Shown piece by piece: positions 513 to 61,135 of a stretch of DNA of 64,000 nt (position 1 is the first letter of the stretch; each line of letters begins with the position of its first letter). Origin of the DNA: Paragordius varius (taxonomy: Eukaryota > Animalia > Nematomorpha); NCBI GenBank assembly GCA_964247055.1, contig OZ176051.1, forward strand, positions 12,090,001 through 12,154,000. The letters are read 5' to 3'. Below the pieces are notes generated by a model that saw only the letters and a program-made list of their open reading frames with translations, ran no database searches and was not told where the DNA came from. Both the position numbers and the translations under genes were made by a program.

Positions 513-3500
513 ATTTGAATTCCAACAATTATAATAATATGAATAATTCAGAAGCAGTAAGGATGTGTAACCCAATTTCAGGTGAATGTATGTGCCCCGA
601 AGGTTGGACCGGTCCGCCCCAATGTGATATGCGATGTCCGCTTGAAGCTTTGACCCTATATCACCCTTCTGAGACAGGATTAAAGTTTTTGAAAATAGAT
701 TAATTCCCTTCTTTGAAAAAAATATTTTTGAATAACCCTTACCAAATTTAGATTTTAATATAAAATATTGGAAATTCTGTGGTATAATGGTTTATTTGAT
801 AAAACAAAAAAATGACAGTAATATGCGAAACTCTGTTGATTGTTATATGCTTGTTATCACTCAAAAACTATTTGACTAATTAACGTTTTTGATTCTAATT
901 ATATATACTACGTCCAAAATTGAAGCACAGACCCCTAGGGTTTATTATAGGTGGAGTTTCATGACAATTTTTAATAATTGAATAGCCAAATGTTAATTGT
1001 TACACTATATCTCATATTACAATCTCTATAATACTTTCTTAACCTCGTTTTTTCCTTTTTGATTTTAATAATTAAAAATAACAGCGTTTTATGATATACA
1101 GTATGATTAAGTATATATTGTTGCCAAATAGCATATACAACAAAGGTCGTTATTATTGGCTTATAGTTATTTGTATCACTTTTTACTATTATTAGCCAAT
1201 AATAATTCTTTTTGCTGCATATGCTTTTTGGCAATAATTAATAACTTTGTAGCAATATATATACTCAATCATACTGTATACATCTATATGTTAGAGTTCA
1301 GCATTCTGCCGAATTTGTAACGAATGTTACAAAGAAACCCCAAACTCAATTGTATTATTACCGTACTTCCAGCGGTCTCAATTGTGGTCTTCAGTGCAGG
1401 TGTGGCCCTTCCTATTTACATAATCCTGAAACTAGACCTCACTATGCTACCAAATACAATATTAATAGTAGTGTGACAAATAATTTTACGGCTCTTTTGC
1501 TTGATTATGCCCGATTTAAGCATTGGTTTTGGAACCCCAATAAACGGCCGAGAACCATGCCAATTATATTTGAATGCACGGTTGAAGATGGACGTTGTGT
1601 ATGTCCACCCGGTAGGATATATATAATGCAAAATATTTTATGTCAAAATCCCATAGGGGTTTTAGTTAATAAAAGTGATTTGACGCTAAACATATTTTAA
1701 TTACTTGAATTAAGTGTTTGTTTTAAATTATTTTATATTAACTTTTATGTTCTTAATTTTTTACATAGATAAATTATTTGGTTTTTATTTTGTAATATCA
1801 TGTTACATTTTAAGACAATTAATTTTTTTACCAAAAAAAGAACTTTATTTTAAATTACCGCTATCATTGGTCGACAAAAAAATCCAAAATCACATTCTAC
1901 TACGAATTATTTATGAATTTTTTTTATTCCATCCCATAAAACATGGCTAAATTTTTTGTTACCCTTACAAAATGTAAAAGTAAAAATTAAATAGTTTTTT
2001 TAACCATTTATAGGGTAAATTGTAGGGCATAAAAATTACTACAAAAATCAAAAAATGACGCAAAAAATTCCTCAATTCAAACATAATTTTTATATTATAA
2101 CTCAATAGGTTTTACCGGTCCATATTGTGAACGCTTATGTCCCGTGGGTACTTTTGGACCAGCCTGCATCCATCGATGCAATTGTACGACAAATGAATTA
2201 GATAAAGATTGTCATCCAGTAACTGGGGAATGTCAAATTGATATGAATCAAATCTCTCACAAAGCCTGCAATCAGGCTAATCAAGGACAAAAATGTGTTG
2301 AAAATTTATCAATATCATCATCAGCCATCTGTAAAGTAATATGTTTGAATGTTTAATATTAATTAATAATTATATTGATTAATATTCAAAAAAATAGGTG
2401 AAATTTGTTTTAACATTTAGACATCATAATATAACCTTATAAGTAAGGATATATAATTTTACAGGATAAAAGGGGTTTCTAACACTTTCATATCTCTCAA
2501 TATAATAAAAACAATAAATGTTGACTAATTTTATATTATTATTATTGTTTATAATTAAAGGATGGATTTTGGGGCCTTGATTGCACAAAAAAATGTGACA
2601 TGGATTGCATTAAGTCGGCCAATAATGTCGGTTGTGATAAAATTACAGGTAAATGCGTTTGCCGACCCGGTTTTTATGGTAAAAAGTGTCACCAAATATG
2701 TCGCGTTGGTTGGTATGGCCAAGATTGCGTATTTAAGTGTCCCACTCAAGTACCAACGCCTAATATAACTGCAACCAATTCTTGTTCAAGTCTTTATGGC
2801 TATTTGGATGTCCGTTTATTATCGCCGTTACCCTGTCATCCTGTACATGGTGGTATTTGTGTTTGTGATTATCAACGCCTTATCAAACATAAAATTGATA
2901 ATTTTGGATCAACCAGAAATTACAAATTAAGAAACGATGAATTGGACCTTAGTGATTTAGATGGACAAAATAATGAGCTTGTGTGTGGAGACTCCCTTTT
3001 ATACGGTAATAATTTGGAAGTTTATAAATTCGTATACCTTGGCACTAATCATTGATTACTAATCATGGATATATAATGCTCTTCGAGGCAAATTAAGATA
3101 CAAATTACGATAAATTAATTATTTTGTTTTAACCTGAATGCGTAATAAAAGATTACCTTATATGAGTGCATGAGTTTATTGCAAATCTATTTGTATTATA
3201 GCCAGTTTTTCTGTTATTAGTTTTAATTAAGTTCAAATACAGTCGGTAATATTTAACTAATTAAAAAAATGCGCGAAAAAAGTATTATATATCAATTTAT
3301 ATAGAGTTCACTTTAATAGAGATTTGTTGATAGTTTTATACGAAATATAGGGTAGTTAACTACTTTAAATTATAAAATGAATTTAACACTCCATTACCTT
3401 TTTAGGTGGTTTTATATCCCAGATCAATTTGAGAATGGAATATCTCAAGGTATTTAAGCTATAAGCATATTAAAATCTGCTTTCTTAAGCCTTTTAGGCG

Positions 3501-6414
3501 CATTATACAAAAATTTTTTTAAATGTAATGAAATTCATCATCCCATACTTTTTTGCCGCCATATTTTCCCCATAAATATTTTTAAATCGCTAATGCAACA
3601 GTTAAATAAATGTATATTATGGTTAAAAAATGTAAATAATTAATTTAAAATAGGCTTTCAGGCTACATTTTACCGGAAAAAACTTGATATATTTTGATTG
3701 TAGTATCAGCTGTTCATTTCAATCGTGTTTTGGACATTCCTGTTTTTAGACTCTAGAAGTCACAAAACTCTTAAAATATAAGCTTTTTTATATAATACGT
3801 GAGAGCATTGTTTGATGATTAAATTCAACTAAAATAACACTGTAGTTATTTACAAAATTGAGCTATGGATTATAAAACCACGCCAAAAGGTAAACTAGAT
3901 AAAGTGATAAATGAAGTGTTGATAATACAATAGAATAACCGCAGACGATATGTCTTATCATCATTTAGTTTTTATAGCACTCTCATTACAAAATAAAAAC
4001 CTGATAGTTTACATATATTTAAAAATTATTAATATTCCTCGCACTTATATCTTTCCTATTATCAGATACGCTAGAAAATGTATTTCATTTGATTGCCCAA
4101 GAAATATCCTTATCTAGTGGATCATCGTTGTCTCCTCGATCTCGTGCGACACGAATTATAATTTTAGGAGTTGGAATCGGTTTAGCCTTATTGCTAATAA
4201 TTGCTGTTTCCTTTTTTTGCTTGGTTGTTAAAAGGAGGCACTCATCTTCCTTGTTATTACTCCAAAAAAATGGGAAAAATTATTATGAAACACATCGAAA
4301 AAAAGGTTAATCCTATTTCATATTGGATCAATTCATATCAATTTTAATAATCTTATTTGTATAAGGTTAATGGGATAAAAGTATTTATAATGTTTCATGA
4401 AAACTAGGTTTACAAACGGCCAATTTGTTTGAATAAGCCCGATTTTTAAAATAATTAGGCAGTAATGTAAATCATCCGTTTTGATTATTCTTATGTTTGC
4501 ATTAATGTTTATTAAACTACTGTAATGTCTTGTACAATTCTAGATCCAGCCGCGTACTATGAAATGGAAGAAAATATGTACGGATTACCCAAGAGTCCGT
4601 TGGGGGTCGTTCCGCTTCAAGAACCACAATTTTCCAGGGAACCTTCAATTTTATTAACATCCCCAAATTGTGAGGACTACGTGGATAAAGAAAGAACACC
4701 AATTAAAAAAATGGGAAGTGACAAGAATTTCATTACGAAAAATCACTCATCCGCTCAAGATAAATTGAATAATGGTAGGCTTTTGTTAATTTTTTTTCAT
4801 ACACTTTTAAACATATTTTTTGGCTTTTTTACAAATGGGAAACTTTTTAACTTCTCAAATGATATAGATTTTGACAACCCAAACTATGGAGGAAAAACGC
4901 CCATAGGTACATTGATACATTTAAACAACAGTCATTACAGTATGATTGTCCCCAATCCAGTGAACAAGACATCCAAATTAGGGCTTAAAAATACTAAAAA
5001 TAATTTAAGTAATAGCCAAAATAGAAATGTTGCTTCGTCCAGTAATCTCCTAAACAATTACAATTATGATGACGACGCAAGCAAAAGTAACATGGAGGAC
5101 ACAAAAAATTTTGGACTGACCCTTGATCGAATCAATAATAATGTTAAATTGAGCAATTTAGAGACAGCGGCTAAGATTGAAGCAAAAGAGAACTCGAAAA
5201 AACGAAAAAGTATTTTGTATTACTATAAATTACATTTTGACGCGGAATTATTTATAATTTAAATATTTTGCAGATAAAATAACAAATGAATAATAATACA
5301 ATTTAAAAAGACGTAGTTTTAAAGATCAACCATATTTTAATAATTTCTATAGTTGTAAAAAACCCGGTTTTATGGATAACCATACTTGATGTTTTTACAT
5401 TTTGTCTCTGTAATTTCAAATATTTACTGTAATTTGGTTAATTTCTTTATATATACAGTATGCATTTTAATGGTTGCTTATTTCAGACTATAGTTGGGCA
5501 ATTTGCATCATAATAGTGTATGGAAAAAAGTAATAATTGTTTATTCAACATTTTGTTGTTTTTTGCATACACTACTGTTGTGTTGCAAATTGCCTAACTA
5601 TAAGTGTAAAATAAGCAACCAATAAGATTATATATATATATTTTATACCAGACATCAATTCTCCAAATCATATATTACACCAAGAAGAAAACACGATAGA
5701 GTCAAACGATGACGGCCCAGTTACTTCTTCCACACTTAAAACTACTTTTCAAAATCAAAATGACAGTATTCTCCATGAATTTTTACCCCAAAGTAATGAA
5801 TCAAACAATAGATTTGAAAAAAGTAGTCACAAGGAAAATTTCCAATCGTCTTCCAATAGCCTTGTGGATGCAGATAAAGATCCGTTTTTATTGGCTTTTA
5901 CGCCCCCGAGCAAGGGTGATAATCATATTTTAATCATTTATTTTGTTTTTTAAAGTTTTTACCTTGACTTACCGTTATGTGACCCAGGAAACAAACTAAA
6001 AATTATATTAAAATTTAATAATAAATAATGTAAGCGGTTGTTAGCATATAATTTAACATTCTATTCATTTTGAATATTATAATGTAAAAAATTATAAATT
6101 AAATATTATTTAATTAGTTTTTATTTAGATAATTTGTTGTACTTCTACTGCCTTTTTAACCTTTGGTTTACAAATATTAAAATTAGTTTTTGCCATGTGA
6201 ATTCAATTTACTTTAGTTATATAATAAAAAAATAATATGTAACTATACTACAATCAGTGGGACCCATAATAGTTAATAAAGTTGTTTTTAATTTGTAAAA
6301 TTTATTAACCTTAAAAGCAATAAAATTATATATTTTATAAAACATTTTTCCTAAATTTTAGAGAATACAAATAAGGACTGTCGAAGTAACAATGACAATA
6401 ATCCCATAATTTAG
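513..6414 (+). CDS. MEGF10/MEGF11/Draper/CED-1-like multiple-EGF single-pass receptor, 5' end outside the window
   Basis: Phase-consistent exons: 513-684, 1295-1611, 2109-2335, 2561-3005, 4066-4305, 4544-4774, 4868-5209, 5652-5915, 6362-6414 (TAG). They encode laminin-type EGF repeats (CNPISGECMCPEGWTGP, CDKITGKCVCRPGFYGKKC), a TM helix (IIILGVGIGLALLLIIAVSFFCLVV-KRR) and a cytoplasmic FDNPNY (NPxY) motif. The 684/1295 junction and the last exon are the least certain. Confidence 0.8.
1099..1276. mobile_element. Tc1/mariner-type palindromic MITE (family A, copy 1)
   Basis: TA|CAGTATGATT…AATCATACTG|TA termini with a TA duplication and long internal inverted symmetry. Four more copies occur in the window. 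Confidence 0.8.
3387..3918. mobile_element. piggyBac-like TTAA MITE (family C)
   Basis: TTAA|CACTCCATTACC…AAATGAAGTG|TTGA termini. The interior matches 21576-22050 (reversed) and 22468-22847. Confidence 0.7.
5489..5602. mobile_element. Short palindromic TA-flanked MITE-like inverted repeat
   Basis: tatagttgggcaatttgcatcataatagtgtatggaaaaaa pairs with ttttttgcatacactactgttgtgttgcaaattgcctaactata. It lies in an intron of the EGF receptor gene. Confidence 0.65.

Positions 6415-6646: not shown

Positions 6647-6650
<4 letters not shown>

Positions 6651-6692
<42 letters not shown>
6651..6692. repeat. (AT)n microsatellite
   Basis: Uninterrupted AT dinucleotide run between the two convergent stop codons. 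Confidence 0.95.
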
Positions 6693-6984: not shown

Positions 6985-9900
6985 TTAAATCATGCATTCA
7001 AGTTCACTACGAATGTAATGATTTTTATCTTCGTTTTCGAAACGGGGGAATGAAGCTACCATTGCATCTTGAGCCCCAATATAAATTGTATTGTAAATTT
7101 TCCAATAAACATCTCTAACCTTGCGAGCCGGATGAAATAATCCCTGCAGAAATATAGTTAAAAATATAAATTTAGGTTAGAAATCAAATATATTTAATAA
7201 CCTATATTTCGTAAAATAACATTTTTATTTATCATAGTTAATATTACCGCTAATATTTATATATTACCAAAAAAAATATTATAAAATAACGAAATAAAAT
7301 TTAAATTAATGCAATCGCTAAAATTATATAATTTGCTTTTCGTACGACTAATAAATATCATTTTAAAAACCTAATTTAAATTATTAACACGGTGCATTTA
7401 ATTTTTTTTCATTAAGTATATATTGCTTTTATAGTGGGGTATATTGTTCATCGAATACCCTAAAAACTTCATTCAAATACTATCACATTTTATGTACGTG
7501 AAAATAAAAAATCAACATAACCCAATAACTTTTCTCATATGTATGAAAACAAAATTTATATAAAAAGAAACCTGTAACGTGTACATAAGCATTCGAGTTG
7601 GACCTAGAGCGACTCTCAGTCCCTCCATGGCTTCATGGACGGCTAAAATAACGTGGGGACTAATCTCAAACGCATTGGGCCAAACGAAATTCATGAGATG
7701 GATAAGGGCATCTTCACAACCGAACCCAACCACGCCCAGGGCTAAATGTTTTATAGCAGCTGCGGCGGTTTGACGATGTACGATATCTCTGTTTAATCAA
7801 TGAATAAAAAATAATAAGTGAACTAATTTATAAGGGGAAACAATATGGTAGTATTTAATTAAGTATAAAAATATATTTTGTTGTAAAAACCAACGCTTTA
7901 CTCCTTTAAATTGATAAACACTAATGATGTGTCATATATAAAATCAATTACCTTACTACAAGGATGTCCGATATACGGCCCTGTGAGATTTAAGAGCGGC
8001 CCGCTAAAATTTAATCCATTTATATATGCTCACAAAAATTATAACTATTGGAAAGAGTCAGAAAAAAATGTTATATTGTGTTTGCATTTTATCTTATATT
8101 ATATTCAATGCGGCACACCACGTTTTTTATGTTAAAAATGCGGCCCGCGAAACCATTTGTGCTGGACATCCCTGCTTTAGTATATAATCATTTAATAGAT
8201 AGTAGTAATTCATTTTATATATATATATATATAATTAGTGTGAAGTAACATGCAATCGAGATTGAAACCGTCAAATAATTTGATTAATCGAAATAATAGG
8301 AAGGACCAATTTTTGAGTAAAATAGTTTACATTATCATATTAATCAAAAATAACCTGTCACTTAAAGCGTCTTCAAGGAGTGGGGTAACAGCATAAATGT
8401 AATCTTTGGCCATTTCTCCAATGTATTCGAATAGGAAAGAAAGTGATTTTAAAACACCGTTTTGTACATTCAACTCAGGTACCCGGTATTCATTCATGAG
8501 AGCTAGGAATATTTACATATATAAAATTAACTTTTCAAAGATTTAGCTATTGGATTCACAAATAAAAAAAATTTGTATTAAAAAAGCATTTAAAACAGAA
8601 AATTGGTATTATTTGTTAACGTTTTTATCTATATACGCAACAAGAATCCCACAATTTTAGAATCTTAAACCCTGGGTAATTTTCATATCCAAATTGAGAG
8701 AAAAACTAAATTTATGATCCTAATTGTGTGGCATTATAATGGATAATACAAAAATTTTAGATGCAAAATTCTTTTTACCTGGAAGGACGGTAAATGGTGA
8801 ACAAGTTTCTGCGACAATAGCAATCGCAACGGTTGTACAAACACGATTTTGTCGTTCTTGGACTTTAAGATTATTGAGTAAAGTTGCTAACACATCGTGT
8901 GGTCTATATATTGTAAATAAATACAAAAGATAAACCATATTTTTTAAAACTTAATTTTTAATCTAACTATCCATTTTTAAGTCATAATTATTGTAACAAC
9001 ATAGAAGGATCAAATAACATAATTTTCTTAATAAAAAAATTTAATATTCCTTCTCTTCCTAATTTATCACAATATTGATTTTACTGTATATGTTAGAAAA
9101 ATTAACATTAATATAAAGAGTCATTAAATAATCTTTTTCTAAAAAAGGAACATAATAGTACCCAATAGCTTTTGCAATATAACCAAAGGTATTGACAGTG
9201 GCGCGTCTGATAGCTTTTTTATGGGCTTTAAGGAGATCCAAAAGTTCAAAACAAATCCGCATCCATTCACGGGCTGAAACGAATTCGCTTCCACGGTCAG
9301 CGATACGGCCAACCAGATCGATACAATTTTCTTGCACTTTTTCATGCCTTTAACATATTAAAAATTATTTAACTATAAGAAAAAAGAAAAGTATTAAGGG
9401 GTAAATATTTAAAAAGAATAATAGTTTTATAATGTCAACTCAATCTATAAAAGCAAGTTTGTTATTTTATTAATTCTAAGCACTAATTTACTAAAACCTT
9501 TATCATGAGAGATATTGACTATATAAAATGACGTACTTTTAAGTTTTTAGTTGAAATTTTAAAACGATTTTTGGGCAAGGGTGTTACCAATATAAACCAT
9601 TTATAAATGTGGTTAATTTACAATAAATACGAAAAAAAAACAATATTAGATCATGAGCAAACCTGTTTTTCAATATGGGTGTAAGTCTAGGCAGTAATTC
9701 TTTGATCGGTGGTGTCATTTTAGTCATACCAATAACGTTAACAATACTCTTGAGAGCTCCAAGGATGCTACCAAGTACCTCAGGATATTCTTCACCAAGG
9801 TATTCGTATAAAACGACCCCCAAATGGCCCATTAACTTTTCCTACATGGTTTAACAAAAATAAGACAGGCTATCGATTGTTTTTTATGTAAAAATGTTTT

Positions 9901-10673
9901 TTTAATTAAGTTTAAAATTACTGTGATAAAAACGTAACGAAATTGTCTAGATAGTTTATTGACTATCTTATAAATAAAAATTAGCAAGAGTTACTATGAC
10001 AAAAAATCGTAAATTTTTATATATATGGAAAATGTCACTTGTTAGCTATTATTTTGGGAAATAAGGTTAAATCACAGTATCAGGGTATATTTAAATACGA
10101 AAAAAGCATTTGCCCATATAATATATATATATATATATATATAATAAATGAATACCTCTTGACACGTTTTCATGACTATGGTTATGCGTGAAATGAGGTC
10201 TGCGGCCTGTTGCCTAACCTTAGCAGATTTATTGTTCAAACGCCAAAGTATGGTACCACAAATTTGGGGTAAATAGGGTTTGACACGTCGACCCAAGCTA
10301 TTAACTACTGCACCAAATCCATTTAACATGACAATATCCTTTGGTTTAATAAATAAATAATATAATTAATTCAATTTTCAAGATTAGTGCAATTTTATAA
10401 ACCTTATTAAGTAATCCCATAAGTTCTTAAAAACATAAAACGAGTGTGGTTCCCAACACCTTTTTTTTGTAAACGCCCCCACCAAATTAAATTTATCATT
10501 CTTGCGCTCCCCTCACAAAAAAATCCAAAATAAAACTGTAAAACACATAAAGAAAAAAAGAGTAAATCATTTTATACTACGACCTAATGTATAAATTTCA
10601 ATTCTGGCTAATAACAGAAAGGCAAAGGCAACCGCATAAATAACACATGAATAAAGCTTAATATTATCAAATG

Positions 10674-10734
<61 letters not shown>

Positions 10735-13700
10735 AACTTTACTTTATCGCAGTTAGTACAAAATATTTTTTTTCATACTTCACTAGTCTGCTCCTGGAAA
10801 GCGTATAAAATGCCATCAATTAATTGTTCCTCTAAGCGAGAATCGATATCGTTTGCACCCAAATTAGTAACGACTTGTTCGATTGTTTCCATAACCATTT
10901 TGCGGAAAGCTTCATTTTCGTCCTTCAGGTCATCCACGACACGCCCTATATATGTGAAAATTTTGATAATTATAAAACCAAAAATGATACGCAAAAAACC
11001 TCAATTAATACAATTTTATACAAATAGAGAAGAATGCTAAATTATATGACTTATGTTGATTATCCGGGGTTAAAACATCCAACAATTTATAAATTAAATG
11101 CTTTCTATTTCAAAGCAATTTTCTAATTTTGAGGATAACAGGGGGCCAAAATATTTATATAGCTATTATAAGGAACACTAGTTATTAAGTATTTATAAGG
11201 CATCATAATAGGCAAAAAATAATATAGCATTTTTATAATTTTCGTACATCAGTAGGACAATTATATAAAAAAATTAAAAGAGTATTAATATAATAAAAAT
11301 TATATTTTTTCCACATGGAGCTTTTCATATTAAACAAAATAATTAAAAACTATAAAAATATTCAAGGTTGATTCAAAAGACTATCACGCACCACAGTTTC
11401 ATAAAAAAATTTCAAACAAAATGACAAAATTCTAAAATATATATGGAAAATACCCAAAATTTCGGCAACGCCAACCTTGTTAGCAATTTCAACCGTCGTA
11501 TCCACCAATTGTCGGTAATTGCGTTTATCGAGAGCCATTCTATGTTGCCAGAAAAATTTGAAGAAAGGCGGCAATATTTCCTCCTTAATGTATTGGGCTT
11601 CAACACCATCCGTTGCGCAACATTGTTTAACAACCTATTCATTTCATTTCATTTTAATTCACATAAATGTATATTGATAAAATATATAAGCCCTTTATGT
11701 TAAGATAGCATTTAGATTGTAAAAATAATCATAAATTCATGTTTGAATAACATATTAAAAGTTTAACAGATGAATTATATAACCAATGAAAATGAAACCA
11801 AAAAATTTTAATATAAAGTCCTAAACTCAAATTTAATCTTTATTCTACCTTAAGCACAATCTTTTTCATTTCCTCGTCGGGGGATTGAAATTCACGGATA
11901 AGAATCAACATAACTTCCCTCGTATAATAATTGGCATATTCAGCATCCATAAGTGGGATAAGGTAACCGATGGCCTTTAGAAAAGCTGCTAAACCCTAAA
12001 TTATGTCAGTAATATAATAGAGAAAAGTTAACAGAAAAACATAGTATCTAAGTGAAAGGCAACAAAAAAAAGTAATAATAAACTCTATATATGTATGAGA
12101 ATATATTTTTTCTAATTTTAATTGATTTAATTTAAATTAGAATATTTTCACAATGGCTTAGATAGTATCATATTAAAATTGATTGATTGATGATTATTAA
12201 TTGGGATAGTTTTATTAAATAAATTTAACCTTATTCATTTAATGCATTATTACAAATACTATATAATATGCCTTAATTTGTGAAAAAACAGGTAGGGTTA
12301 TTGGCTTAGAATAACAAAGTTAAACTTTCTATATTCTGTAAATATGTTATTAACTGGTTTATATATAATAATCATTCATAATGTTGCACCCAAACTTACT
12401 ACAGAATCTCCATTCTTTAAGTTCACAATAATTAATTATAAAACACGATTACATTAAATTACTTATTGAATTCAAATTTAACAATAAAACTCAAACAAAT
12501 GTGTAAATACTTCAATATAGCCACCAACCGCAAAAAAAGGTATGTTAAGTTCTTGGAGATTAGAAAACACTATTTATTAACTCCAAACTCTTATTGTAAT
12601 GAAATAAAGAAATGCAAAAATGAGTTTTAACCTTTCCACGATGTGTCCGAATACCTTTCCAAAGTGGTTTAAGGACTGAATCAAACGATTCAATACCATA
12701 TGGCGTGGCTGCCTCAGCCAAGCCAGCAAGTGAAAGGGCCGTTATAGTACGCACTTTTTGCTGTTCATCCACCAAACCTTAAATATAATAAGGACATCAT
12801 ACAAATAAATATTTTGGAAATAATCGAAATCTTAAAAATCAAAAATTTCTCTAAATTAAACGTTAAATAGTAGGTTTTTTTGTAGGAAATTGCTTAAAAA
12901 TAGTATTTTTAAATATCAAGAGTGCAACATTTTTTATCCATCTAATAAATTTATAATGCCAGAATAAAATTGTTTCTAAAATATTTCATATAATTTTTGA
13001 TAAGTAATCTCTATCAAATGTTAAGTCAAAAAATTCATACCATGTTCAATAATTTCGACCATCGATCGAAGATGGGGTAACACAGCACAGCCCATAAGTA
13101 TGGCTATCTGTTGTACAATTTTAATGCCTGTGTGTCTGGCTTGCCAAGATTTTTTGCTTTTGCACACAGCCTAAAATTATATATTTACTATACAGTCATG
13201 TATCTTTTAATTTATCAAAAATTTATTTTCTTTCGATAAATGGGTTTTGGTAAAGAATAAAACAGGTTCTATGATATTAACATATCCTATCCATCAAAAA
13301 AATATAAGAAACCATAGAGCTCTTGTTTCCTTTACCAAATATATATACCCATTAAAGGAAAAAAAAATGATAAAATAAAGGATACATGACTGTATCTTCC
13401 TTAAATTTATTCAATAACAATTATTAATAAAATGTAAATTCTCATTATAGCAAATTATCAATAAAATTCACAATGTATAAATTTGACAAAGAGGTTTTTG
13501 CCTTTAACAAAATATTATTGGTAAAATAAAACTATTTTAGTATTTAAATTATAAGTTGATGACAGTTCCTTTTTTCATAGATAAGAGCAATTTTGTATCA
13601 AGTGATAAAAAAAATCCATTCGCCTCTGCTCAAGACTGACACATAGAGTAAGGAATAAAAATTCTTTCGCCCAAATAATGGCAATACGAGGGATATATAG

Positions 13701-16700
13701 GTAAAACTTAGATCTTCGAACCCGGTCGAAAAAAATGAAAGGAAAACCGAGCTGATTACCAAGAATTTAAAAATAGAACCCAAAGTGGTTCTTGAGACTT
13801 GAAACCGAATCCGGTATCAATTCACAAAGCCCTAGAGAAAATTATCAAAAAATTTTACTTTTCTCAATTAAACTAATCTATATTCTACCTTTAAAAACGG
13901 TAATAGAGCAGGGATCCCAAGCGCCGAAGCGACAACAGCAAAAGCACGAGCCGTCGTATTCCTAACATATTCATCCACGTTATCAATGTCCGGTCTCATA
14001 ACGCTAATCATGGTGGCTAAGCCAGCGGCCTTGGCTAAATTCGAAATGATTTCACGGCCTTCAACGCGGGCATAATAATCTTCATCGATAAGCAGTGGTT
14101 CAATCACAACCAAAATCTAGATATAGAGTGTATGTAGTTGAAAAATTTAAAAAAAATTATTTTCATATAATTTTCACTCATTAATTTACAGTGTAATGTT
14201 CGTTTTATCTTTCAAAAATTCAACAATTGTTAATATATCAAACAATTATTTTTTAAATTTTCCATTTTTTTGATTGATATATTCTAATTTCTATCATAAA
14301 ATTATCAAGAAAATAACAATTTACATCATTTTTTAATAAGACTGCGCAAAAATTGGTTTACATAATTTAATTAAAAAAAGTTTGACACTGTAGCATACAA
14401 ATTTATAGATATAATCAACGCCAAATAAAAAGCCCTAATAATGTAAATTAATGTCAAAAAAAAACCCAGAAAATAATCATACTTAAATAAGTATTTTACC
14501 TTGTGTACAAATGGTCGAACCAAGTCATCCAGCTTGTACAGGATGCGATCAATAACTTTCACTAGTAAATGTCTTTCCTGGTCCTCCAACGTAGGTGACA
14601 TAAGTAAGGGAAGGATTTGATTAAACAGGGGGCCAGCTCCAAGTTCCCTTGCTTTATCTGTTATTTGACGTAGAGCGCTCTACGGCAAGAAATAATAGAA
14701 ATTTTAAATAAATATCATAATAAATTTTGTGCACATATATAATATGGTCTAAAAACTTTACCCAAAAATAATGATACATGCGACTTTATTGAATCAAAAT
14801 AGGATTAAAATTTTAATATACAGTTTAATGAAATATTAATTTATAGTTGTTTAATATACAGTTTAATGAGTATTAATTTATGGTTGTTTTGTTGTTTCCG
14901 AGCAAATAATACTAAATAGAAAGCAATTATAAAACGGTATTCATATATATGGAAGTATATTTGGTTACAGACTAATATTTAATTAATTGCAAAATAAACA
15001 TCCAATAAAATATATGTTATAATAAATTAACGCAATAACCATAAGAATTTTACATCTTTGATGGAAAAAAAGGAATCATATTGAAAACAAAATGCTAATT
15101 ATAACAAGTTTTAATGTGATAAAAACGATTTTGAGATTAAACAAAACAAAACTTTTCGCATAGGCGGTGTCCCATTCTTAATTTTTAGGAGGAATTTCAT
15201 AATTTTTCGTTCTTTGGCTTCTTCGGGGTTCAGGGCTTCCTCATCCACGTCTTGCAGCAGTTTATCAAAATATTGACTATCCTCCGGTTTTAATTGCGGT
15301 AAAGTATCATCTAAAACAGGTCAATACATAGATACTATTTACAGTTCAAAATCACTGTTGAACGATTCAAATTCACCCTCGAAAAATTCAACACCCTAAA
15401 ATTATATGTTTTTAAGATTAGAAACTACTTACATTTTTTTATATTTTTAAAAATGAAATTTTGCTAAAAATTAATGTTATACTGAAAAACTAATTAACTA
15501 TGCCATAAAGATATATTACATACATATAATAAGTTATATCAGCCTAAAAACCTATAAATTATTTTTGGGGTGAATTTAAATTCAAGGGTAAATTTGAATC
15601 GTTTAAGGGTGAACTTGAATTGTAAATGGTATATATATATATATATATAACTGAGTAATTGGCATCTATGCTAATGTTATAAAAACTAAGGTTTAAAGAG
15701 TATGATGTATAGCTGTTTTTTGTTAAAAATATTTGTCTTTTAGTTCATACGTTTTTTGACGTCTTTATAATTTCAATTTTAACTACTCGTAAAGAGATAA
15801 TATAATTTTCAACTTGTAGAAATGAGTTGTTTATGGTAATAAAATATTTATAACGTACATACCTTTTGGTTGTAAGTCAGGTACGGCTCCACCTGATCCT
15901 GCCATACTTTTCCGATCAGGAGTAGCCTATAAAACATATAAAAGAATTTTTGTATTGTATTAATTGTGAAAAAGTGTAAAACCACTATATAAGGAGAAAA
16001 AATTACACAAAACAAAAACTTAAATTTTACAAAGTACACATATAAAGTATGGGGGCGAGCTTAATACGTATTTTGTAATTAGGATGATGTAATTTATTTT
16101 TAGAATAAATTGGACTGCACTGTCCCAATTATTATAAATTCCAACCTTTATTAGTCAACATCATAACATAAAAAGTAAAACTAATCGAAAAAAATGATAT
16201 TCTCAAGTTAGTTAATCTATTTCAACCATAAAAAAATTTACAAAATTAAACCATATTATGAGTAACAGACAAACCTGCACTACTACTCAAATATTTCCAA
16301 TTTTAACCGTATATCCTAAAAATTAACCATATTATTAATTTCAACAATAATTTTGCCAGAAAATTTTTTATCGTTAGTTAAGATAAACCTGCATGAAAAA
16401 AGTGTTGGCTCCCCCAGGCGCTCCAAGGCCACCCATAGGCGTAGGAGTTCCCATAAGTTTTCGCACAGGCGTCCTAAGAGGGACATAACCTTGAGGGGGT
16501 GGTAGCACTCTATAACCTGGAGGCAGTAAGGCATCCAACTCTTCATCGGTCACGGGGCGATTGCGTTCATCCATTTCTTTTTCCCAGCGATACGCTTGAA
16601 CTTGCTCGGGCGTCATGGACATTAAATGACCTAAGCACATATATTGGACTACTGTATGGAGAGAACACAATAATTAAACCGTATAGGGGATAGACGACAT

Positions 16701-19700: not shown

Positions 19701-20666
19701 CTGTTATAATAATGATATTTAAAATAATTAACTAGCCCATATATTTTTGTTAAATTGAACTAAGTAATATTTATTCAATTTTTACATTTGATTTAAAAAA
19801 ATTAAAAAATTTTTTATTAAATATTGGTTTGTTTTTTCAATCCTTTTAATTATATATATTTAACCTTCTCTGGGCCAAGCGTATTATGGAACATGGTAGT
19901 GCTTGAACCATTCATATTGCCTGGATAATCATCGTCCTAAACAGAATGCAAAATAAATAAAAATAGTAACGATAAATCTAATCCCAAAAATAGGTTTTAA
20001 GATTTTCGATTGATTTTTATATCAATAATTAAAAAGTATATTATATATAGGTAAGTAGTGTCTTTGTGAAGGATGATCATTTTACTTTTCCCATGGTATT
20101 GTAATTTTTTCAGCAGAAGATAGGATTATAGATAGATGTAACACTTTCAAATCATACATAACATAACAATCTATAGTATAGGTGTAAAAAACTATTAAAC
20201 TATTTTATTTATACACACACAAGTTAACATTCCCCTTTAAAGGGAAACAAACTCGGCACTCATGATTAGGATATGCGTGTGTTGTGTGATAAGATGAAAA
20301 GCTAAATTTAAAAAAATGGCATAAGAAAGGGAAATATATTATGACAAAATAAGTTTATAAAACATGATCGGTTTGCAATGAAAACAAAATTTGTACCTCT
20401 ACATCATCCTCAGGAGCTGCAGGTATAGAAGTAACATATCCTTCATATTTTCCTTTCGAACTTTGTTCATAAATATCTTGATCAAAATAAGCTTGATCCG
20501 TGCTCAAAGCTACTCTTTCTTCCTCAACATAGGTTTGAATACCGGCCTTTTTGGCTTGTATTTTGCGTATTTGTTCTTCAATTTCTATGAATAATATTAT
20601 AAATATAATTATAAATTAAAAAATTATAATAAAAAAATTAAAACCTTCATGCGATGATGCGGCCAT
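6985..20666 (-). CDS. SF3B1: Splicing factor 3B subunit 1 (SF3b155/Hsh155), U2 snRNP HEAT-repeat protein, about 1394 aa
   Basis: 27 phase-consistent exons on the minus strand: 20666-20645, 20584-20397, 19936-19865, 19600-19483, 19226-19153, 18713-18555 (or 18540), 18153-17994, 17597-17433, 17318-17227, 17151-16857, 16630-16389, 15926-15863, 15310-15153, 14679-14500, 14116-13889, 13170-13041, 12777-12632, 11995-11849, 11634-11454, 10945-10779, 10338-10156, 9841-9663, 9347-9162, 8903-8779, 8502-8355, 7788-7572, 7143-6985 (TAA). The translation has RWDETP ULMs, the p14-binding region ([12 protein letters not shown]), and HEAT repeats nearly identical to human ([58 protein letters not shown]). 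Confidence 0.99.
7959..8174. mobile_element. hAT (Charlie-like) MITE (family D) in SF3B1 intron 25
   Basis: TIRs CAAGGATGTCCG / TGGACATCCCTG, degenerate 8-bp TSD ccttacta/ctttagta, and internal GCGGCCCG repeats shared with other family D copies. Confidence 0.75.
10677..10729. repeat. (TA)n microsatellite
   Basis: Pure TA run in SF3B1 intron 20. Confidence 0.95.
15335..15629. mobile_element. Foldback-type element (family F1) in SF3B1 intron 12
   Basis: TA|CTATTTACAGTTCAAA…TTGAATTGTAAATGG|TA termini. Both arms are made of 21-bp ttcaaattcacccttgaacaa-type units. Confidence 0.75.
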
Positions 20667-38700: not shown

Positions 38701-38728
38701 AGCCAACATTAATCAACATTAATGTGCA

Positions 38729-38765
<37 letters not shown>

Positions 38766-44700: not shown

Positions 44701-47700
44701 TTAATTTAAAGGTTCGTTTGCTATGAATTTTTCTAAAATCAACAAAATACATTTAACATAAATTAGAAAATCAACTATGTTAATCAAAATTCCGAGGTAA
44801 CAGAAATGCTTAGAATCATCAAATTTTATGAAAAATGTTTTTATACCGTTTCCATCATACAACAAAATAGCATGAATATCGATATTTTATTAAATTTTTA
44901 TACAAAGCATGCATTAAACAATATGTTTGTTTGATGCATAATCTAGCATATATTTATGGCGAAATCTCGGCATTTTTGTGTTTTAGGGAATCACTATTAA
45001 ATATTGAGACTTTCGACCCACATCTAAAAAAATTTATGATAATATTGTTTTCATTTTTAAATATATATATATATATAATATGTAGTTGGTATTTTATGAA
45101 AAAACGTTAAACTTTTACCAAAAAAAATTATCAAACATTGTTTACGTATTTTTGTGATGTAACCAAAGAGATCAACCAATCCAAAAATGTAAACTTTGTT
45201 ATATCACGTTTAAAACCAAAAGCACCATAAAAATCATTATACTTTATCTATCTGAATAAATAAATTATATATACGTATATATATTTCACTATGGGCACAA
45301 TTTTTGTAAAGCCCGTAGTAGTAAAATCATTGTCCAAAACATTTGACATTTCTGAATTTTATTCCATCAATATATATAGTATATATATATAATTAACAGA
45401 TTTAAGCCCAGGAAACGTAAATTTTGTTTCTTCATTGGTGACTGGGGGGAGTTGCAGTAGTCTTGTAAGCGGATGTGGAGTCCCGGGTAGCCTTTCTCTA
45501 ACTCAAACGACAAAAAGTCAACAATCTATCGATAATGATAAAATTGATAAAAATGAGCAAAGTGAAAGCTTTAACGAAAACAATATAAATACTATTATCA
45601 AAATTTCAAATCAATACACCTGTGGTTTGGAAAATAGTACATCGAACGCCGTAATCGAATCTGGTGCCGTCATGTATGGCTTAAATGATACCTCAAAACC
45701 GCCTAAGAACGTCAATAATAACACTTGTGGCAAAAATATTGATCTTAATGGAGAAACTACCCAAAATACACACCACCATAATTCAAATCATAATGATAAA
45801 ATTGACCCCAGCAATGAAACAACTATAATTAACCATCTTGGAAATAAAAACGAAGATACTACTTCTTCGTTTGAAAAAGGATTAAATGGATTTGCTGGTA
45901 AAAACGACTCGACATCACTGATGATGACTGATATGTTGTTTGCTAAAGGACAGTTGACTTATTCGAATGGGCTTAATGGTAATGGAGCACAATCTAACCA
46001 TTCATCACCCCAATCAATTATAATGGGGGGAGAAGATGAAATTATCGGGATACCGTCTTTCAAACAATATGGATCATTAAATTGTCATAGGTTAATTTTA
46101 ATTTTTTGATCACCTATTTCGTTCCACTTTGTAAAGGACTCAAACTTAAATTTATATATTATTATAATCATAAGCCGCGGATAAATTATTTTATGATTTA
46201 AAAAGTTAACAGATGTTAAAAGTTTAGCAGTACAATTACAAATACAGTATGAGTAAGTATACGTTGCTAGAAAGTCATCAATTATTGCCAAATAGCATAT
46301 ACAGCAAAGGGCACTATTATTAGCGAATAGTTATTTTTTTAACTTTTTATTATTATTTTTTAATAATGATTTACTTGTTGCATATGCTATTTGGCAATAA
46401 TTAATAACTTTATAGCAGCACATACTAACTCATACTGTAATATACCAACAATTTTCATAAATATAGCGATTTAGCTAAATAAGTCATAAAACGGAAAAAT
46501 AATTATTTCAATGAAAATAACCGCATATTGAAAATAAAGAAAATCTCTGAAACATATCAAAAATTTACTGTGAATGGCAGTAATCAATTTTGTTTTGATA
46601 TGGGGGGGAGGGGGGGGCACTTAGATTTTAAGAAATGACGTGTTATTGTTTATTTTAAACTAAAAATAAAATTTTATTATGCTGTAAGGCCTATAATTTG
46701 ATATGGTTCAATAGAGTAAAAAACGGTAAAGCCCCAAAGTTTTTTTCATAAACCTAGATGTTTATTTATATGATATTTTTTCATGAATCATATAGTCAAA
46801 ATAACACAGTAAATGGATTTGGAACGTACCCCCAAATCGCTATTGGGGCAACGAATTCGATTGCGCCAAACAATATAATATCAGGACAACAGAATCAAAA
46901 TTCTTCGGGTACACATGTGACATACTTAGATCAATTGTATGGTTCAGACATGACATTGGCCGCTTTAGCTGCGAATGGTCAAACAGCTGCAGTTATTAAT
47001 CCCTTGACAGGTGAATTAATAAAATCAATTGATGTATAAAGTTAAAAAAATATGTGGTAAATATACCATTTGCACTTCAAGAGTGTCCTTAAACAATTCA
47101 AGTTGGTCCTTGAACATTTCAATCCAAAATTATTTTAAAAATTTAATAAAGATATACGGTTTTTCAAAGATTAAAAGTTGATATCGATTTAAAATTTATG
47201 TTAAATAATATAGGTTAAAACAATAAAATAGATGAATTATTTACGATATTTGATTGATAAAAAATAAAAAAACAAAAAAGTCAAAGGACCAACTTGAACT
47301 GTTCAAGGACCAACTTGAATTGTTCAAGGACCAACTTGAAATGTTCAAGGACCAACTTGAAGTGTTCAAGGACACTCTTGAAGTGCAAATGTATTCAAAA
47401 ATCTAAGGAGGCAAATATCAAATTGAAGCAAAAATTTTTCGTAAAAGTTATTTTTAAAAAGCTTGACCACTAGATCATAGTCATATAGTTATTTAATTAA
47501 ACAAATTTATGATGTAAATAAATGGTAATATCAATATATAGCATATTCGTTGGATTCATCTTTTTTGTCAGCTCAACCAGGAACCGCGTTTCAACAAATT
47601 CAAGCACTTCAATATGGTAAATTATATTAGATTTTATCACTTAGGTTAAAATTTCGTTTAAAATTATTTTATATTTATAACCAAATTTGAAAATATAAAT

Positions 47701-49394
47701 GGTATACATTATTTTTAAAACTATCCTAACATTCGACCGACCAGTTAGGCAAAATCATGTGTATCTTTGGGAACAATTTTTATTTAGATTATTTTTTGAT
47801 AAATTGGTCGCATAATATATTTTGATAACTTATAGACTATATTACTTTTTTTAGCTTATCCCACAGCTTTGTACAATGCGTACAATCAAACATTTCCAAG
47901 TCAACTGACAACTAATGTGGCCAGTCAAAATATCACCAATCAACACCAAAGAGAAGGTGAATTAATTCAATCTTAAAGTAGAGGATTAATACGACAATGT
48001 ATATGTCCACAGAAATTTTATTCACATAAATTGAGCATCACCACTTAAACAGTTCAAAAACCTATTTTGTAAAAATTTTCATGTGATATTTTACTTGATA
48101 GGAAAGTATTAAAAATATATAACTAGGACTTTTATCGTCCTCGGCGAAAAAGGCAGATTTCTGGTTGTTTAATTACATTAAATCCTGGAATATATACGAT
48201 TTAAATGATGAGGAATCTCAGAGCTATTGTTTTGTATCATATTGATAATTTATTTTAAATTTTGTAGTTATTGATCTGCAAAAAGTCGCTAAAATAGCAC
48301 TTATTGATTAAATATATTTTTTTAAAAACGGAGGCTTGCTCGCATATATTATTGAATATGTCTAAGCCAAACAATCTAATTTTTAATTTTGCTGCGAAAA
48401 TATTTTTTATGAGCAATTTTTATAAAATAACTAGTAAAATGCCGAGATTGCGCGACAATCTTTAACATATGTTATAATAAACACAATAAAGGTTATTTTT
48501 AAAAAATGCATATATTGCTCAAATAATAAATTTAACAAAATTTTGTTACACCATATTTCATAGTATATTGAAGCAATAGGGAAAAGATGTAAAGTTTTTC
48601 ATATAATTCGATATTAATGAAGATTTCTATGACCTCAGAATTAATAAAAATAATAGTTCGCTAAATTTTTGTAATTTTTTACCTAATATAAATTTATATT
48701 TAATTTATGATGTGATAATCTTTTGCCTTATGAGGCTAAGACAAAAAATATTTTTTATATTATCTTAAAGCGTTTTTTATACCGCTTTCAGCATGCTTTA
48801 ATATACCATAAATTATACTACAACAAAATTTTATTGAATTTAACCATAAGCAAAATACGCATTTATTAGCTTATATTGCTCCCAGGCACTTTTAATTTAT
48901 TGTATAGAGCTAGTGCTGCTAGTGCTTATAGAGCACACATCTACAAATTAAAATTGTATACAAATATTGATTTGTTCGTAAATATTAATAAAATTTTGAA
49001 TTATTATAATTTATCATCAATAGGGCCGGAAGGATGCAATCTTTTCATCTATCATCTACCGCAAGAGTTTGGAGATGCCGAACTTATGCAGATGTTTGTC
49101 CCTTTCGGTTCAGTCATTAGCGCTAAAGTGTTCGTTGATAAGGCCACCAATCAAAGCAAATGTTTTGGTAAAATATTTTCAGTTAACATGGTTAATTTTA
49201 TATTTATTATAAGACTAAAATTGTATTTATACAAAATTACTATTGTTTATGTAATAATTTTATTAGGTTTTGTAAGTTATGATAACCCAACGAGTGCCCA
49301 AGCAGCGATACAATCCATGAATGGTTTTCAGATCGGGATGAAACGACTCAAAGTTCAGTTAAAACGGCCAAAGGATGCGAGCAAGCCATATTAG
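26780..49394 (+). CDS. CELF4: CUGBP Elav-like family RNA-binding protein, CELF3-6 class (CELF4/unc-75/bruno-3-like), 3 RRMs, about 1145 aa
   Basis: 17 phase-consistent exons: 26780-27608, 27691-27773, 33399-33576, 33700-33779, 38785-38954, 39552-39708, 40734-40928, 41312-41459, 41753-41871, 42559-42630, 42753-42834, 45400-46090, 46796-47010, 47572-47616, 47855-47956, 49024-49167, 49267-49394 (TAG). RRM1 is [10 protein letters not shown]…GCAFLTY. RRM2 is RKLFVGML…[15 protein letters not shown]3 is [27 protein letters not shown]…[17 protein letters not shown], characteristic of CELF3-6. The symbol marks the subfamily; the gene is probably co-orthologous to CELF3-6. The start codon and linker exon boundaries are less certain than the RRM exons. 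Confidence 0.93.
28998..29194. mobile_element. Tc1/mariner-type MITE (family A, copy 2)
   Basis: TA|CAGTAAGAGTAAGTATAT…ATATACTTATTCATACTG|TA termini, palindromic interior. Confidence 0.85.
30059..30284. mobile_element. hAT MITE (family D)
   Basis: Perfect 8-bp TSD CTCTAAAT on both sides, termini CAGCAGGGGGTTGTCAA / TTGGGCATTCCTG, internal GCGGCCCGCG repeats. Confidence 0.8.
32110..33075 (+). mobile_element. Decayed, 5'-truncated RTE-clade non-LTR retrotransposon (reverse transcriptase C-terminal part) in CELF intron 2
   Basis: Broken frames give [32 protein letters not shown] (the YADD-type box), [11 protein letters not shown] and RGRPPMRW, all RTE/BovB-like motifs. It ends in an (AACC)n tail. 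Many stops and frameshifts. Confidence 0.85.
33900..34104. mobile_element. Small GC-rich TIR MITE (probably hAT-type)
   Basis: TIRs CAGAGGCGTAGCT / AGCTACGCCTCTA, with a degenerate 8-bp flank attactta/attaccca. Confidence 0.65.
35722..36294. mobile_element. piggyBac-like TTAA MITE (family B, reversed) nested in the hAT element
   Basis: TTAA|CTCTTCGATTCAAATTGGGG…GTATCCAAGTG|TTGA termini. Confidence 0.8.
37364..37928. mobile_element. piggyBac-like TTAA MITE (family B) nested in the hAT transposase
   Basis: TTAA|CACTTGG…GAAGTG|TTAA termini. Removing the element and one TTAA restores the local transposase frame TGG ATA ACA TTA AAA CCA GAA TTT AAT TGG (WITLKPEFNW). Confidence 0.88.
38732..38762. 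repeat. (TA)n microsatellite
   Basis: TA run about 20 nt upstream of the CELF exon 5 acceptor. Confidence 0.9.
40201..40608. mobile_element. Foldback-type element (family F1) with 21-bp tandem arrays in both arms
   Basis: TATA|TCATTTACAGTTCAAATT…AATTTGAATTGTAAATGG|TATA termini. The right arm has about 7 copies of gggtgaatttgaattgttcaa. Confidence 0.8.
42005..42285. mobile_element. Degenerate foldback element (family F1)
   Basis: tcaaattcaccct units at left and inverted agggtgaa(a)ttgaattgtt units at right. The spacer resembles the spacer of 40201-40608. Termini are eroded. Confidence 0.6.
44600..44870. repeat. Palindromic dispersed repeat (family K)
   Basis: atgatgtaaacggtaaaa…ttataccgtttccatcat inverted pair, related to 57343-57622. 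Confidence 0.45.
46245..46437. mobile_element. Tc1/mariner-type MITE (family A, copy 3)
   Basis: TA|CAGTATGAGTAAGTAT…ATACTAACTCATACTG|TA termini. Confidence 0.85.
47066..47391. mobile_element. Foldback-type element (family F2) with 21-bp tandem array
   Basis: TA|CCATTTGCACTTCAAGAGTGTCCTT…AAGGACACTCTTGAAGTGCAAATG|TA termini, with about 5 copies of aaggaccaacttgaa(a/c/t/g)tgttc at right. Confidence 0.8.
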
Positions 49395-50610: not shown

Positions 50611-50938
50611 CCGGGATGTCCAACACCCGGCCTTCTGAGATATTATGTGCGGCCCGCGAAAAATTCGCAAAAATTACCAAATGAATACGAATTAATTCTA
50701 CACTTTACGAAAATGTACTCACAACACCTGATGTTATTTCTTAAGAATAATTCTTTCCAATCGTGTATGAAAAAAATTGGTAAAACAAACACTATTTTTA
50801 TAATCTTGCTATTTTTTTGACATTTTTATGTTTGAAATCTAATAAAATATTTATTATTGCCCATATGTTTTAAAATGCAGCCCGTCGGAATTGAGTCAAC
50901 AATGCGGCCCACCAACCCATTTGTGCTGGAAAGCTCAG
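50611..50938. mobile_element. hAT MITE (family D)
   Basis: Left terminus CCGGGATGTCCAA, internal GCGGCCCGCG repeats, degenerate right end ccatttgtgctggaaagctcag. Confidence 0.7.
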
Positions 50939-59445: not shown

Positions 59446-59465
59446 GCCCGCCCATATATATAAAA
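59446..59465 (+). promoter_or_regulatory. Candidate core promoter (GC box followed by TATA box) of the small secreted-protein gene
   Basis: GCCCGCCC at 59446-59453 is immediately followed by TATATATAAAA, about 60 nt upstream of the ATG at 59520. TATA-like strings are common in this AT-rich DNA; the GC box and the position are the informative parts. Confidence 0.45.
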
Positions 59466-59519
59466 AAGCTAAAATTCCAAATTAAAAGTATATTTGTTAT
59501 TGATAGTAACTTTGTAAAA

Positions 59520-61135
59520 ATGAAATTCTACTCCCTAATTGTAGCAATCATCCTTTTGAAAGCGATATATTCGGACCGTGGTAATTTTTTTTATTATCTT
59601 TAAATAATTATTGGCCAACTCTAAGAGTGTATTGCAGTATACGCATTCATGTTTAATAGGCTTGTATATATAATCATCATGTAAACTCACTAATACCGAT
59701 ATTTTTATAATTGAAAAAAAATTCGATTATCGCTGAATTTAGGTTATATTAAAATGATTTGTTAACTTAAATAGGTATTACACAATTGTTTTAGTAATAA
59801 ATATATTCGAGGATGGAATTTATGATTAAATCATTTACCATACCTTGGTAATATCTGCTTTATAGCAATCAATGAAAGCAACTTTTTTAGCCGATATTTT
59901 TTTATAATAAATATTTTTTCCATATAAATAAATTATTAGTTGCTAAAATTTTTATATAACAACGCATTTTTTATTCAATCTTTCAGAGATTTATGCAATA
60001 AAATAAAATAAGAGTTAGGGTCCTTTTTGCTTGTTGATTTAAAAATAAGGTTATTTGGGCCGATACTACCATAACAATAAACAATTTTTACTTATGAGAT
60101 TAATTTAAATTAACCATAAATGTACAAATATGTATATTTGTTATTCAGTTACCGAAAATTTGAGAATAACATACCAAAAGGATCCCAATAGACCCGACTG
60201 TAATAATTGTTATAAAGTTGGTCGATCGTATCATCCTTATGTGTACAGTGTATGGGTAAAGATCACTCTCAAGGATAAACTGTTTTATGATAATTATGTA
60301 AGAAATAAAATACTTGATTATCTCATTTTATTTGAATCAAATTGGGTTATCTAAAGATTCCAGATTTTTAGATTGATTTAATTTACTATCCCAAAATAAA
60401 TTATATCAATGAGCCAAAATATATAAATAGAAATTTGTTTTGAAAAAGGTTCCATATCAAACTATTCGACGCCTATTTATTTTAAAAATTTTCTGCAAAA
60501 TATTCTGTTGTTTATTCTAACGCTAAAATTAGAGTTTTTATCATAAATATCGTATAAAACATACATAACAGAAAAAGTGGTTTATTTTGCATTATATTTG
60601 TATTTAACTAATCCATTCATGCCATGTTAACAAATTTCTTTATCTTGAAGTGTTTATCCATAAAATAACTAAAAAAATTTCATGATTTTTTTTTATATTT
60701 TGGTGCATCAATATAAGTGGAAACTTTTGCAATAAAAATATTTGATTTTAAACAGGCTTGAGCTCCCCATAGACCCCAATTTGAATCGGAAACTGTTCAA
60801 GAAATATGCAATATCGAAAAACAATTTCAATATATATTGTTTTAAATAATATTAAAAAGAGATATTATATGAATATATATGGTAATTGCAAAAAAGCAGA
60901 ACATGCGAAAGCTTTAAACTGGTTATAATACTTTAATGCCTCATTTACGGTCATATTCTAAAAACTTTCTTTTATATTTTCTAAAATTTAGATAGTAGGC
61001 GAAGATGTTACCGTAAATTTCAGGGATCACCGTGATGAAATCTTTCACGTACTTATGACATACAAATTAAATAATGGAACCAAATATGTCATAGATGATG
61101 TCTTTAATCCTCAAACATGGGACCGATATCATTAA
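59520..61135 (+). CDS. Small secreted protein of unknown family (103 aa, signal peptide, CxxC pair)
   Basis: Exons 59520-59580, 60149-60255 and 60992-61135 (TAA), with GT-AG introns in matching phases (1, 0). The translation is MKFYSLIVAIILLKAIYSDRVTENLRITYQKDPNRPDCNNCYKVGRSYHPYVYSVWIVGEDVTVNFRDHRDEIFHVLMTYKLNNGTKYVIDDVFNPQTWDRYH. AATAAA follows at about 61192. All three exons are GC-richer than their flanks. Confidence 0.8.
60335..60800. mobile_element. Degenerate family B TTAA MITE (reversed) in intron 2 of the secreted-protein gene
   Basis: acagaaaaagtggtttatttt, ttccatatcaaactattcgacgcc and ttttaaacaggcttg…ccccaatttgaatc match reversed family B. Termini are eroded. Confidence 0.65.

Follow-up and report, generated by a model that had tools for sequence, protein, structure and literature searches.

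Weak intron-side donor consensus in a 64-kilobase window of the horsehair worm Paragordius varius

What marks the start of an intron when the intron side of the splice donor carries almost no information? This question is raised by a stretch of 64,000 nucleotides from the horsehair worm Paragordius varius (Nematomorpha; contig OZ176051.1, positions 12,090,001 to 12,154,000 of the forward strand). We refer to the whole stretch as the window and use its own numbering for all coordinates below. The initial annotation of this DNA had claimed that G at the fifth intron position (+5) is close to background across the genes of the window, and that the 5' splice-site consensus has shrunk accordingly. 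We re-examined the claim with 47 curated donors, 26 from the SF3B1 gene, 15 from a CELF gene and six from the gene of a multi-EGF receptor. The weak donor consensus in the window is confirmed, and we argue that it probably reflects a feature of the lineage rather than of base composition, altered small nuclear RNAs (snRNAs) or mistaken gene models.

Donor sequences and the support for their junctions

All 47 curated donors start with GT and all 26 SF3B1 introns end with AG, which identifies them as U2-type GT-AG introns; ATCC at +3 to +6, as in the U12-type donor /RTATCCTT, was found in 0 of the 47 donor contexts. G at +5 occurs in nine donors (19%; Wilson 95% interval approximately 10-33%, calculated by hand). 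These are the donors at 17432, 15862, 13040, 10778 and 9662 in SF3B1, at 1612 and 4775 in the EGF receptor, and at only 27609 and 40929 in CELF. The frequency is not significantly above the 11.5% G of the intron background (binomial p = 0.09) and is far below both 50% (p = 1e-5) and 78% (p = 2e-17). At +3 we counted A in 25 donors, T in 15, G in four and C in three, which makes 29 purines; +4 is A in 19 and T in 19, +6 is T in 20, and no donor reads GTRAG. The bases that metazoan donors typically carry inside the intron (+3 purine, +4 A, +5 G, +6 T) thus do not form a consensus here, and all four positions are at the level of the intron interior (A.356, C.109, G.115, T.419). Relative to this background, positions +3 to +10 have entropies of -0.04 to +0.05 bits. 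Relative to exon background, 0.52 bits are found at -2 and 0.89 bits at -1, positions that carry A in 34 donors and G in 36 (77%). For the 26 SF3B1 donors taken separately, the counts are five with +5 G, A14, T11, C1 and G0 at +3, none with GTRAG, and 21 each with G at -1 and A at -2.

These figures come close to those of the initial annotation, which had reported +5 G in 9 of 52 introns (5 of 26 in SF3B1, as here), +3 T in 16 of 52 (15 of 47 here) and -1 G in 42 of 52. The donors it had quoted as examples are also present, with AAG|GTTAAA at both 19864 and 12631, CAG|GTTTTT at 16856 and CAG|GTTTCT at 7571, and the ends of the range it had given fit the donors at 685 in the EGF receptor and at 60256 in an orphan gene. 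When the 47 donors are sorted into published classes (PMC11842720), 28 are left-handed (-1 G, +5 H), one is right-handed, eight have both features and ten have neither. They are ordinary U2-type GT-AG donors, nearly all of the "AG//GU" or "left-handed" kind, in which -2 A, -1 G, +1 G and +2 T alone are conserved.

The bases at +3 speak most directly to the role of composition. Pressure towards AT cannot explain T at this position, because A is as AT as T; +3 would be nearly all A if selection for a purine held, and its actual bases follow the background ratio of A to T. The acceptor provides an internal control. Position -3 of the SF3B1 acceptors is T in 19 introns, C in four and A in three, so the pyrimidine rule is kept (23 of 26) and C has merely shifted to T, unlike what is seen at donor +3.

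The SF3B1 gene occupies 6985..20666 on the minus strand and consists of 27 exons and 26 GT-AG introns of 60-718 nucleotides. The first bases of introns 1-13 are at 20644, 20402, 19864, 19482, 19152, 18554, 17993, 17432, 17226, 16856, 16388, 15862 and 15152, and those of introns 14-26 at 14499, 13888, 13040, 12631, 11848, 11453, 10778, 10155, 9662, 9161, 8778, 8354 and 7571. The curated model gives a clean translation, and a single exon matches human SF3B1 in PDB with E ~1e-42. Junctions were called with a spliced protein-to-DNA aligner whose score is built from GT/GC...AG and the protein match alone, and which cannot favour a consensus at +3 to +6. Nine references were aligned, namely an alga, a plant, Plasmodium inui, database representatives, Tupaia, Lingula, Limulus, amphioxus and a wasp, the last four of which served as the animal references for junction agreement. 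All four agreed on 20 introns and at least three of the four on 21 of the 26. Across the HEAT region, 14 introns were placed identically with every reference, except for one or two introns with the Tupaia entry (P0159) and with P0096. In addition, 17 of the 26 introns match introns of Lingula, amphioxus, the wasp Phymastichus or the mite Oppia in exact codon position and phase, and this sharing confirms the SF3B1 junctions independently. The earlier view that these junctions are set by protein conservation is well supported by the agreement of references and by the shared positions.

Few of the SF3B1 donors depend on a choice between neighbouring sites. Introns 2, 6 and 9 have alternative junctions, none of which has +5 G, and intron 8 alone is affected, with 17432 (+5 G) competing against 17438 (non-G); the four references all take 17432. 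Of the quoted donors, AAG|GTTAAA of intron 17 (12626..12634, minus strand) is at a shared position where Lingula has AAG|GTGAGG and amphioxus AAG|GTATGC, and CAG|GTTTTT of intron 10 (16851..16859, minus strand) was agreed by all four animal references. The last SF3B1 intron starts with CAG|GTTTCT (7566..7574, minus strand), where Lingula has CAG|GTAAGT, the wasp CAG|GTAAAT and amphioxus CAG|GTCAGA. The N-terminal part was curated by hand because of a duplication in the Tupaia entry and lineage-specific insertions in the TP-rich region. The duplication, internal and 60 residues long, led to false small exons, and this reference was replaced by Lingula, Limulus, amphioxus and the wasp. Two introns called by the aligner in the TP-rich region (17252-17109 and 16979-16935) were rejected, their DNA being GC-rich and in frame. 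The insertions in this region span 17151-17260 and 16857-17151, and the P. varius protein has 1392 amino acids versus approximately 1304-1333 in the other animal references. Intron 1 is 60 nucleotides long with 5% GC.

The CELF gene (CELF3-6-like; 26780..49394, plus strand) was modelled with 15 introns by inspection of reading frames and junctions. Conserved RRM sequence on either side pins six junctions, with donors at 27609, 27774, 33577, 33780, 47957 and 49168. The joins restore KG|CAFLTY, TLPG|MSRP, SRG|CAFVKF, TMP|GASSSL, REG|PEGCN and CFG|FVSYDN, and the RNP1 motifs (KG|CAF...) and REG|PEGCN are recovered through these junctions only; they were compared with human CELF4. The RRM part of exon 1 returned no match as a search query. 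The nine linker donors (38955, 39709, 40929, 41460, 41872, 42631, 42835, 46055 and 47011) were placed by frame continuity, composition and acceptor quality, with lower confidence. The Draper/MEGF10-like multi-EGF receptor is represented by its 3' part (1..5262, plus strand), with the gene start upstream of the window. Its six donors, at 685, 1612, 2336 (alternative 2297), 3006, 4306 and 4775, were derived from cysteine spacing, frame continuity, the transmembrane segment and the NPxY tail, and are likewise of lower confidence. A gene finder based on composition only recovered 24 of the 26 SF3B1 introns after training on the entire gene and 16-21 in two-fold cross-validation. It took open reading frames (ORFs) of transposons and satellites for CELF exons and was used as a guide only.

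To compare these donors with those of other animals, SF3B1 loci from five species were analyzed with the same aligner, which reproduced the annotated protein exactly in each; the 97-kb Limulus locus was left out because of its size. Lingula (20 introns, intron GC 34%) has +5 G in 16 donors, a +3 purine in 18 and GTRAG in nine, and amphioxus (23 introns, 37%) has 16, 18 and five, respectively. For the AT-rich controls, the corresponding numbers are 10, 15 and eight in Phymastichus (17 introns, 25%), four, three and zero in Oppia (six introns, 22%), and one, three and zero in the wasp Cotesia (four introns, 24%). The frequency of +5 G in P. varius SF3B1 differs from that in Lingula (Fisher p = 7e-5), amphioxus (p = 5e-4) and Phymastichus (p = 0.011). 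It also differs from the three AT-rich controls pooled (15/27 vs 5/26, p = 0.01), as does the frequency of GTRAG (8/27 vs 0/26, p = 0.004). At orthologous intron positions, which allow 44 paired comparisons, +5 G is present 31 times in the other animals versus seven times in P. varius, and a +3 purine 36 versus 24 times. The mean match to CAG|GTAAGT is 5.3 of 9 in P. varius SF3B1 versus 6.5-6.7 in Lingula, amphioxus and the wasp. Because the equally AT-rich wasp and mite keep +5 G (10/17 and 4/6), AT-richness alone is insufficient as an explanation. A weak consensus common to comparably AT-rich animals, which by the criterion of the initial annotation would have reduced the pattern to a composition effect, is not seen in this small sample. 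In Oppia nitens, three of the six donors read G|GTTTG (+3 T, +4 T, +5 G). The +3 purine rule can thus relax in another AT-rich ecdysozoan that keeps +5 G.

If the intron side is uninformative, real donors must be told apart from other GT sites by other features. The SF3B1 pre-mRNA contains 617 GT dinucleotides, 26 of which are real donors, and 22% of the decoys equal or exceed the median real donor in their match to CAG|GTAAGT. Two perfect GTAAGT sites inside introns are unused in the model. AGGT occurs at 16 real sites, at 16 exonic decoys and at 16 intronic decoys. SF3B1 exons have 45% GC and its introns 22%, a contrast like that of the composition-defined (AU-rich) introns of plants. At the real donors the GC step, taken over 40 nucleotides on each side, is +0.26 versus approximately 0 at decoy AGGT sites, and only 6 of the 32 AGGT decoys have a step at the level of real donors. 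These data fit a definition of donors by AG|GT together with a contrast in composition, a relationship that is correlational. The initial annotation had proposed that donors are marked mainly by -1/-2 and by AT-rich introns. This stands insofar as -2/-1 hold the sole detectable information outside the GT and a GC step accompanies the donors. Greater reliance on the exon is not seen, however: with -1 G in 19/20 Lingula and 20/23 amphioxus donors, the exon positions of P. varius do not surpass those of other animals, which argues that donor information has been lost rather than moved.

Explanations for the missing consensus

One explanation invokes composition and drift only: AT-biased mutation and the small effective population of a parasite would erode weak positions, while the spliceosome stays unchanged and tolerant. 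The introns are indeed poor in GC (22%), acceptor -3 has moved from C to T, a slight excess of +5 G over background persists, and Cotesia, with an intron GC of 24%, has +5 G in only one of four donors. Intron-rich species also tend to have a weaker 5' consensus. Yet AT bias includes no preference for T over A, and 11 of the 26 SF3B1 donors have T at +3. Moreover, at equal AT content Phymastichus and Oppia still show the +5 G counts given above, and the wasp keeps a +3 purine in 15 of 17 donors. SF3B1 is also an essential, conserved gene that needs efficient splicing at 26 donors, and zero information at four positions suggests that selection there is absent. We consider it unlikely that composition and drift are the whole explanation.

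An altered or missing reading of +3 to +5 by snRNAs, through changes in the U1 5' end (C4, pseudouridines 5 and 6) or in the U6 ACAGAGA box, appears quite improbable. If a new base were read, a new preferred base would be expected, yet +3 to +6 are at background. Conservation across eukaryotes is very broad for both the ACAGAGA box of U6 and the 5' end of U1. The U1 sequence ACUUACC was found in candidates from nearly all yeast genomes surveyed (PMC10581693), which also counts against this explanation. The remaining alternative is an artefact, in which mis-called junctions or a sampling fluke of the window mimic a weak consensus. The gene finder found only 16-21 of 26 introns in cross-validation, and junctions called without homology, in the CELF linker and the EGF receptor, can err and so mimic background. 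Nevertheless, +5 G is equally rare in the introns agreed by four references (4/20) and at the shared positions (3/17). The probability of observing five or fewer in 26 at p = 0.5 is 0.001, and the same pipeline yields the exact annotated protein and consensus-rich donors in five other species. An artefact is therefore largely refuted, and we give it hardly any credence.

The explanation that we favor, with a probability of roughly 0.6, is that the weak consensus is a feature of the lineage, in which the splicing machinery would exert no selection for a particular base at +3 to +6. Several points weigh against this. The sample comprises three genes from one 64-kb window, and the controls comprise one gene per species, from a brachiopod (Lingula), amphioxus, two wasps and a mite. 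The junction calls rest on protein homology, frame, cysteine pattern and composition, that is, on models at the level of DNA. About one third of the 47 junctions were called by frame and composition alone, and mis-calls among them would resemble background. There is possibly a mild enrichment of +5 G (19% vs 11.5%, p = 0.09), such that the constraint may be weak yet present. In the mite, +3 T stands beside +5 G, and tolerance of +3 T may therefore predate the P. varius lineage. Finally, the mechanistic steps below are inferred.

Under such a lineage-wide loss of selection, recognition of the 5' splice site would depend first on its four central base pairs with U1 and then on U5 loop 1 at the exon end, and the contact of U6 ACAGA with +3 to +5 would add little specificity. 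The lost information could be supplied by the contrast in composition between exon and intron, akin to the AU-rich introns of plants, and exonic enhancers probably contribute as well. Tolerance of this kind would need a change in a factor that tunes reading of the intron side. Candidates are a LUC7L2-type protein that is lost or weakened relative to the LUC7L3 type, or a changed METTL16 or SNRNP27K; the initial annotation had named altered U1 or U6, U1-C, LUC7, METTL16 and SNRNP27 as possible causes. We propose only tentatively that the whole lineage, probably the horsehair worms, dropped the read-out of +3 to +6 through loss or change of one of these factors. Intron starts would then consist of AG|GU plus a step in composition, the mirror image of fungi that have right-handed sites only.

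Other features of the window

The window has a GC content of 27.6%, and the assembly of Gordionus montsenyensis has 26.93% (10.1101/2023.06.26.546503). A scan of the window yielded no tRNA and no Rfam family that reached its gathering score, snRNA genes included. Besides the three genes discussed above, an orphan three-exon "secreted protein" gene was modelled at 59519..61135 (plus strand) from its ORFs and a start that resembles a signal peptide. Its second donor is at 60256, and its two introns were left out of the donor counts. A single-exon ORF of 334 amino acids at 62114-63115 gave no recorded match in an exact look-up.

Within CELF, the intron at 49168-49264, which splits RRM3 (CFG|FVSYDN), is approximately 97 nucleotides long and free of stops in the exon frame, resulting in an ORF of 172 amino acids; if retained, it would still put the sequence after it one base out of frame. 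Intron 2 (5.6 kb) carries ORF fragments of a degraded reverse transcriptase (RTE/LINE-like) at 32117-33078 and also at approximately 30000-30350. In the linker, a GC-rich run of 11 alanines (38860-38900) directly follows a conserved segment that includes RRMQQ. Dispersed tandem repeats occur in CELF introns (40180-40660, 41968-42280 and 47291-47371) and in SF3B1 intron 12 (15345-15646). This intronic family reads through as heptads, identity among the places is 72-90%, and one copy was mis-called as an exon by the gene finder. CELF intron 2 also has a short dispersed repeat in common with an intron of SF3B1 and with intergenic DNA, with weak copies at 8125-8179 and 50613-50674.

In the EGF receptor, the loops of consecutive EGF repeats are extended by long in-frame insertions (552-1611 and 2109-2335), and one such loop has 57 residues between CRC and the next Cys. 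The DNA of this loop has approximately 37% GC, as estimated by eye, and is free of stops, which indicates coding sequence and not a missed intron. The NPxY motif of the tail, FDNPNY, is at approximately 4870-4890.

Known donor classes and the meaning of their imbalance

AG//GU and //GURAG donors occur at about the same frequency in the metazoan species analyzed, and the presence of two classes has been discussed as a possible basis for regulated choice between alternative 5' splice sites (PMC9803359). The P. varius donors resemble the AG//GU sites (U5-class, left-handed) in their strong -2 A and -1 G, in +5 non-G and in lacking //GURAG. They differ in that the AG//GU class makes up about half of metazoan sites and stands beside //GURAG, whereas here GTRAG is found in 0 of 47 donors and the preference for a +3 purine is gone. 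Left-handed sites are favored by LUC7L3 and right-handed sites by LUC7L2, and the sites of fungi without LUC7L3 are almost all right-handed, which has been read as co-evolution with the LUC7 paralogues (PMC11842720). Those fungi share with P. varius the dominance of one class across a whole lineage. Their sites, however, are right-handed, with an intron-side consensus and without exon bias, so that the almost entirely left-handed donors of P. varius form a mirror image.

Plant introns need AU-richness, and plants retain a preference for A at +3 and +4. Dicot introns are like those of P. varius in their large contrast in composition between exon and intron and in their weak intron-side donor positions. 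They differ in having measurable information at +5 and +6 (0.27 and 0.21 bits in plants; PMC10599564), whereas +3 to +6 have approximately 0 bits in P. varius. The preference at +4 moves when METTL16 or SNRNP27K is lost, and the switches between A and U at +4 in Saccharomycotina that are linked to this loss resemble our case as lineage-wide changes on the intron side (PMC10581693). The yeast change is tied to factors of the helix between U6 and the 5' splice site. In those yeasts the preferred +4 base was switched and +3 and +5 were conserved; in P. varius +4 is A19/T19, and +3 and +5 are lost as well. Our searches of a paper library for horsehair-worm genomes and splicing returned no statement on their splice signals.

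A weak donor consensus has practical consequences for annotation. Software for gene prediction or spliced alignment that was trained on ordinary donors may mis-call junctions in a genome of this kind. One horsehair worm genome has a BUSCO score of 71.6% against the metazoan set (10.1101/2023.06.26.546503). If mis-calls do occur, they could add to the apparently "missing" universal genes behind such a low score.

The model that took shape between 2022 and 2025 proposes that animals and plants balance an exon-side class of donors (U5, LUC7L3) with an intron-side class (U6, N6-methyladenosine, LUC7L2). An animal without the intron-side class and without the +3 purine rule would constitute a natural test of this two-class model. 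It makes a prediction about the factors expected to be absent or changed, and this prediction can be checked in the public horsehair worm genome and RNA-seq data.

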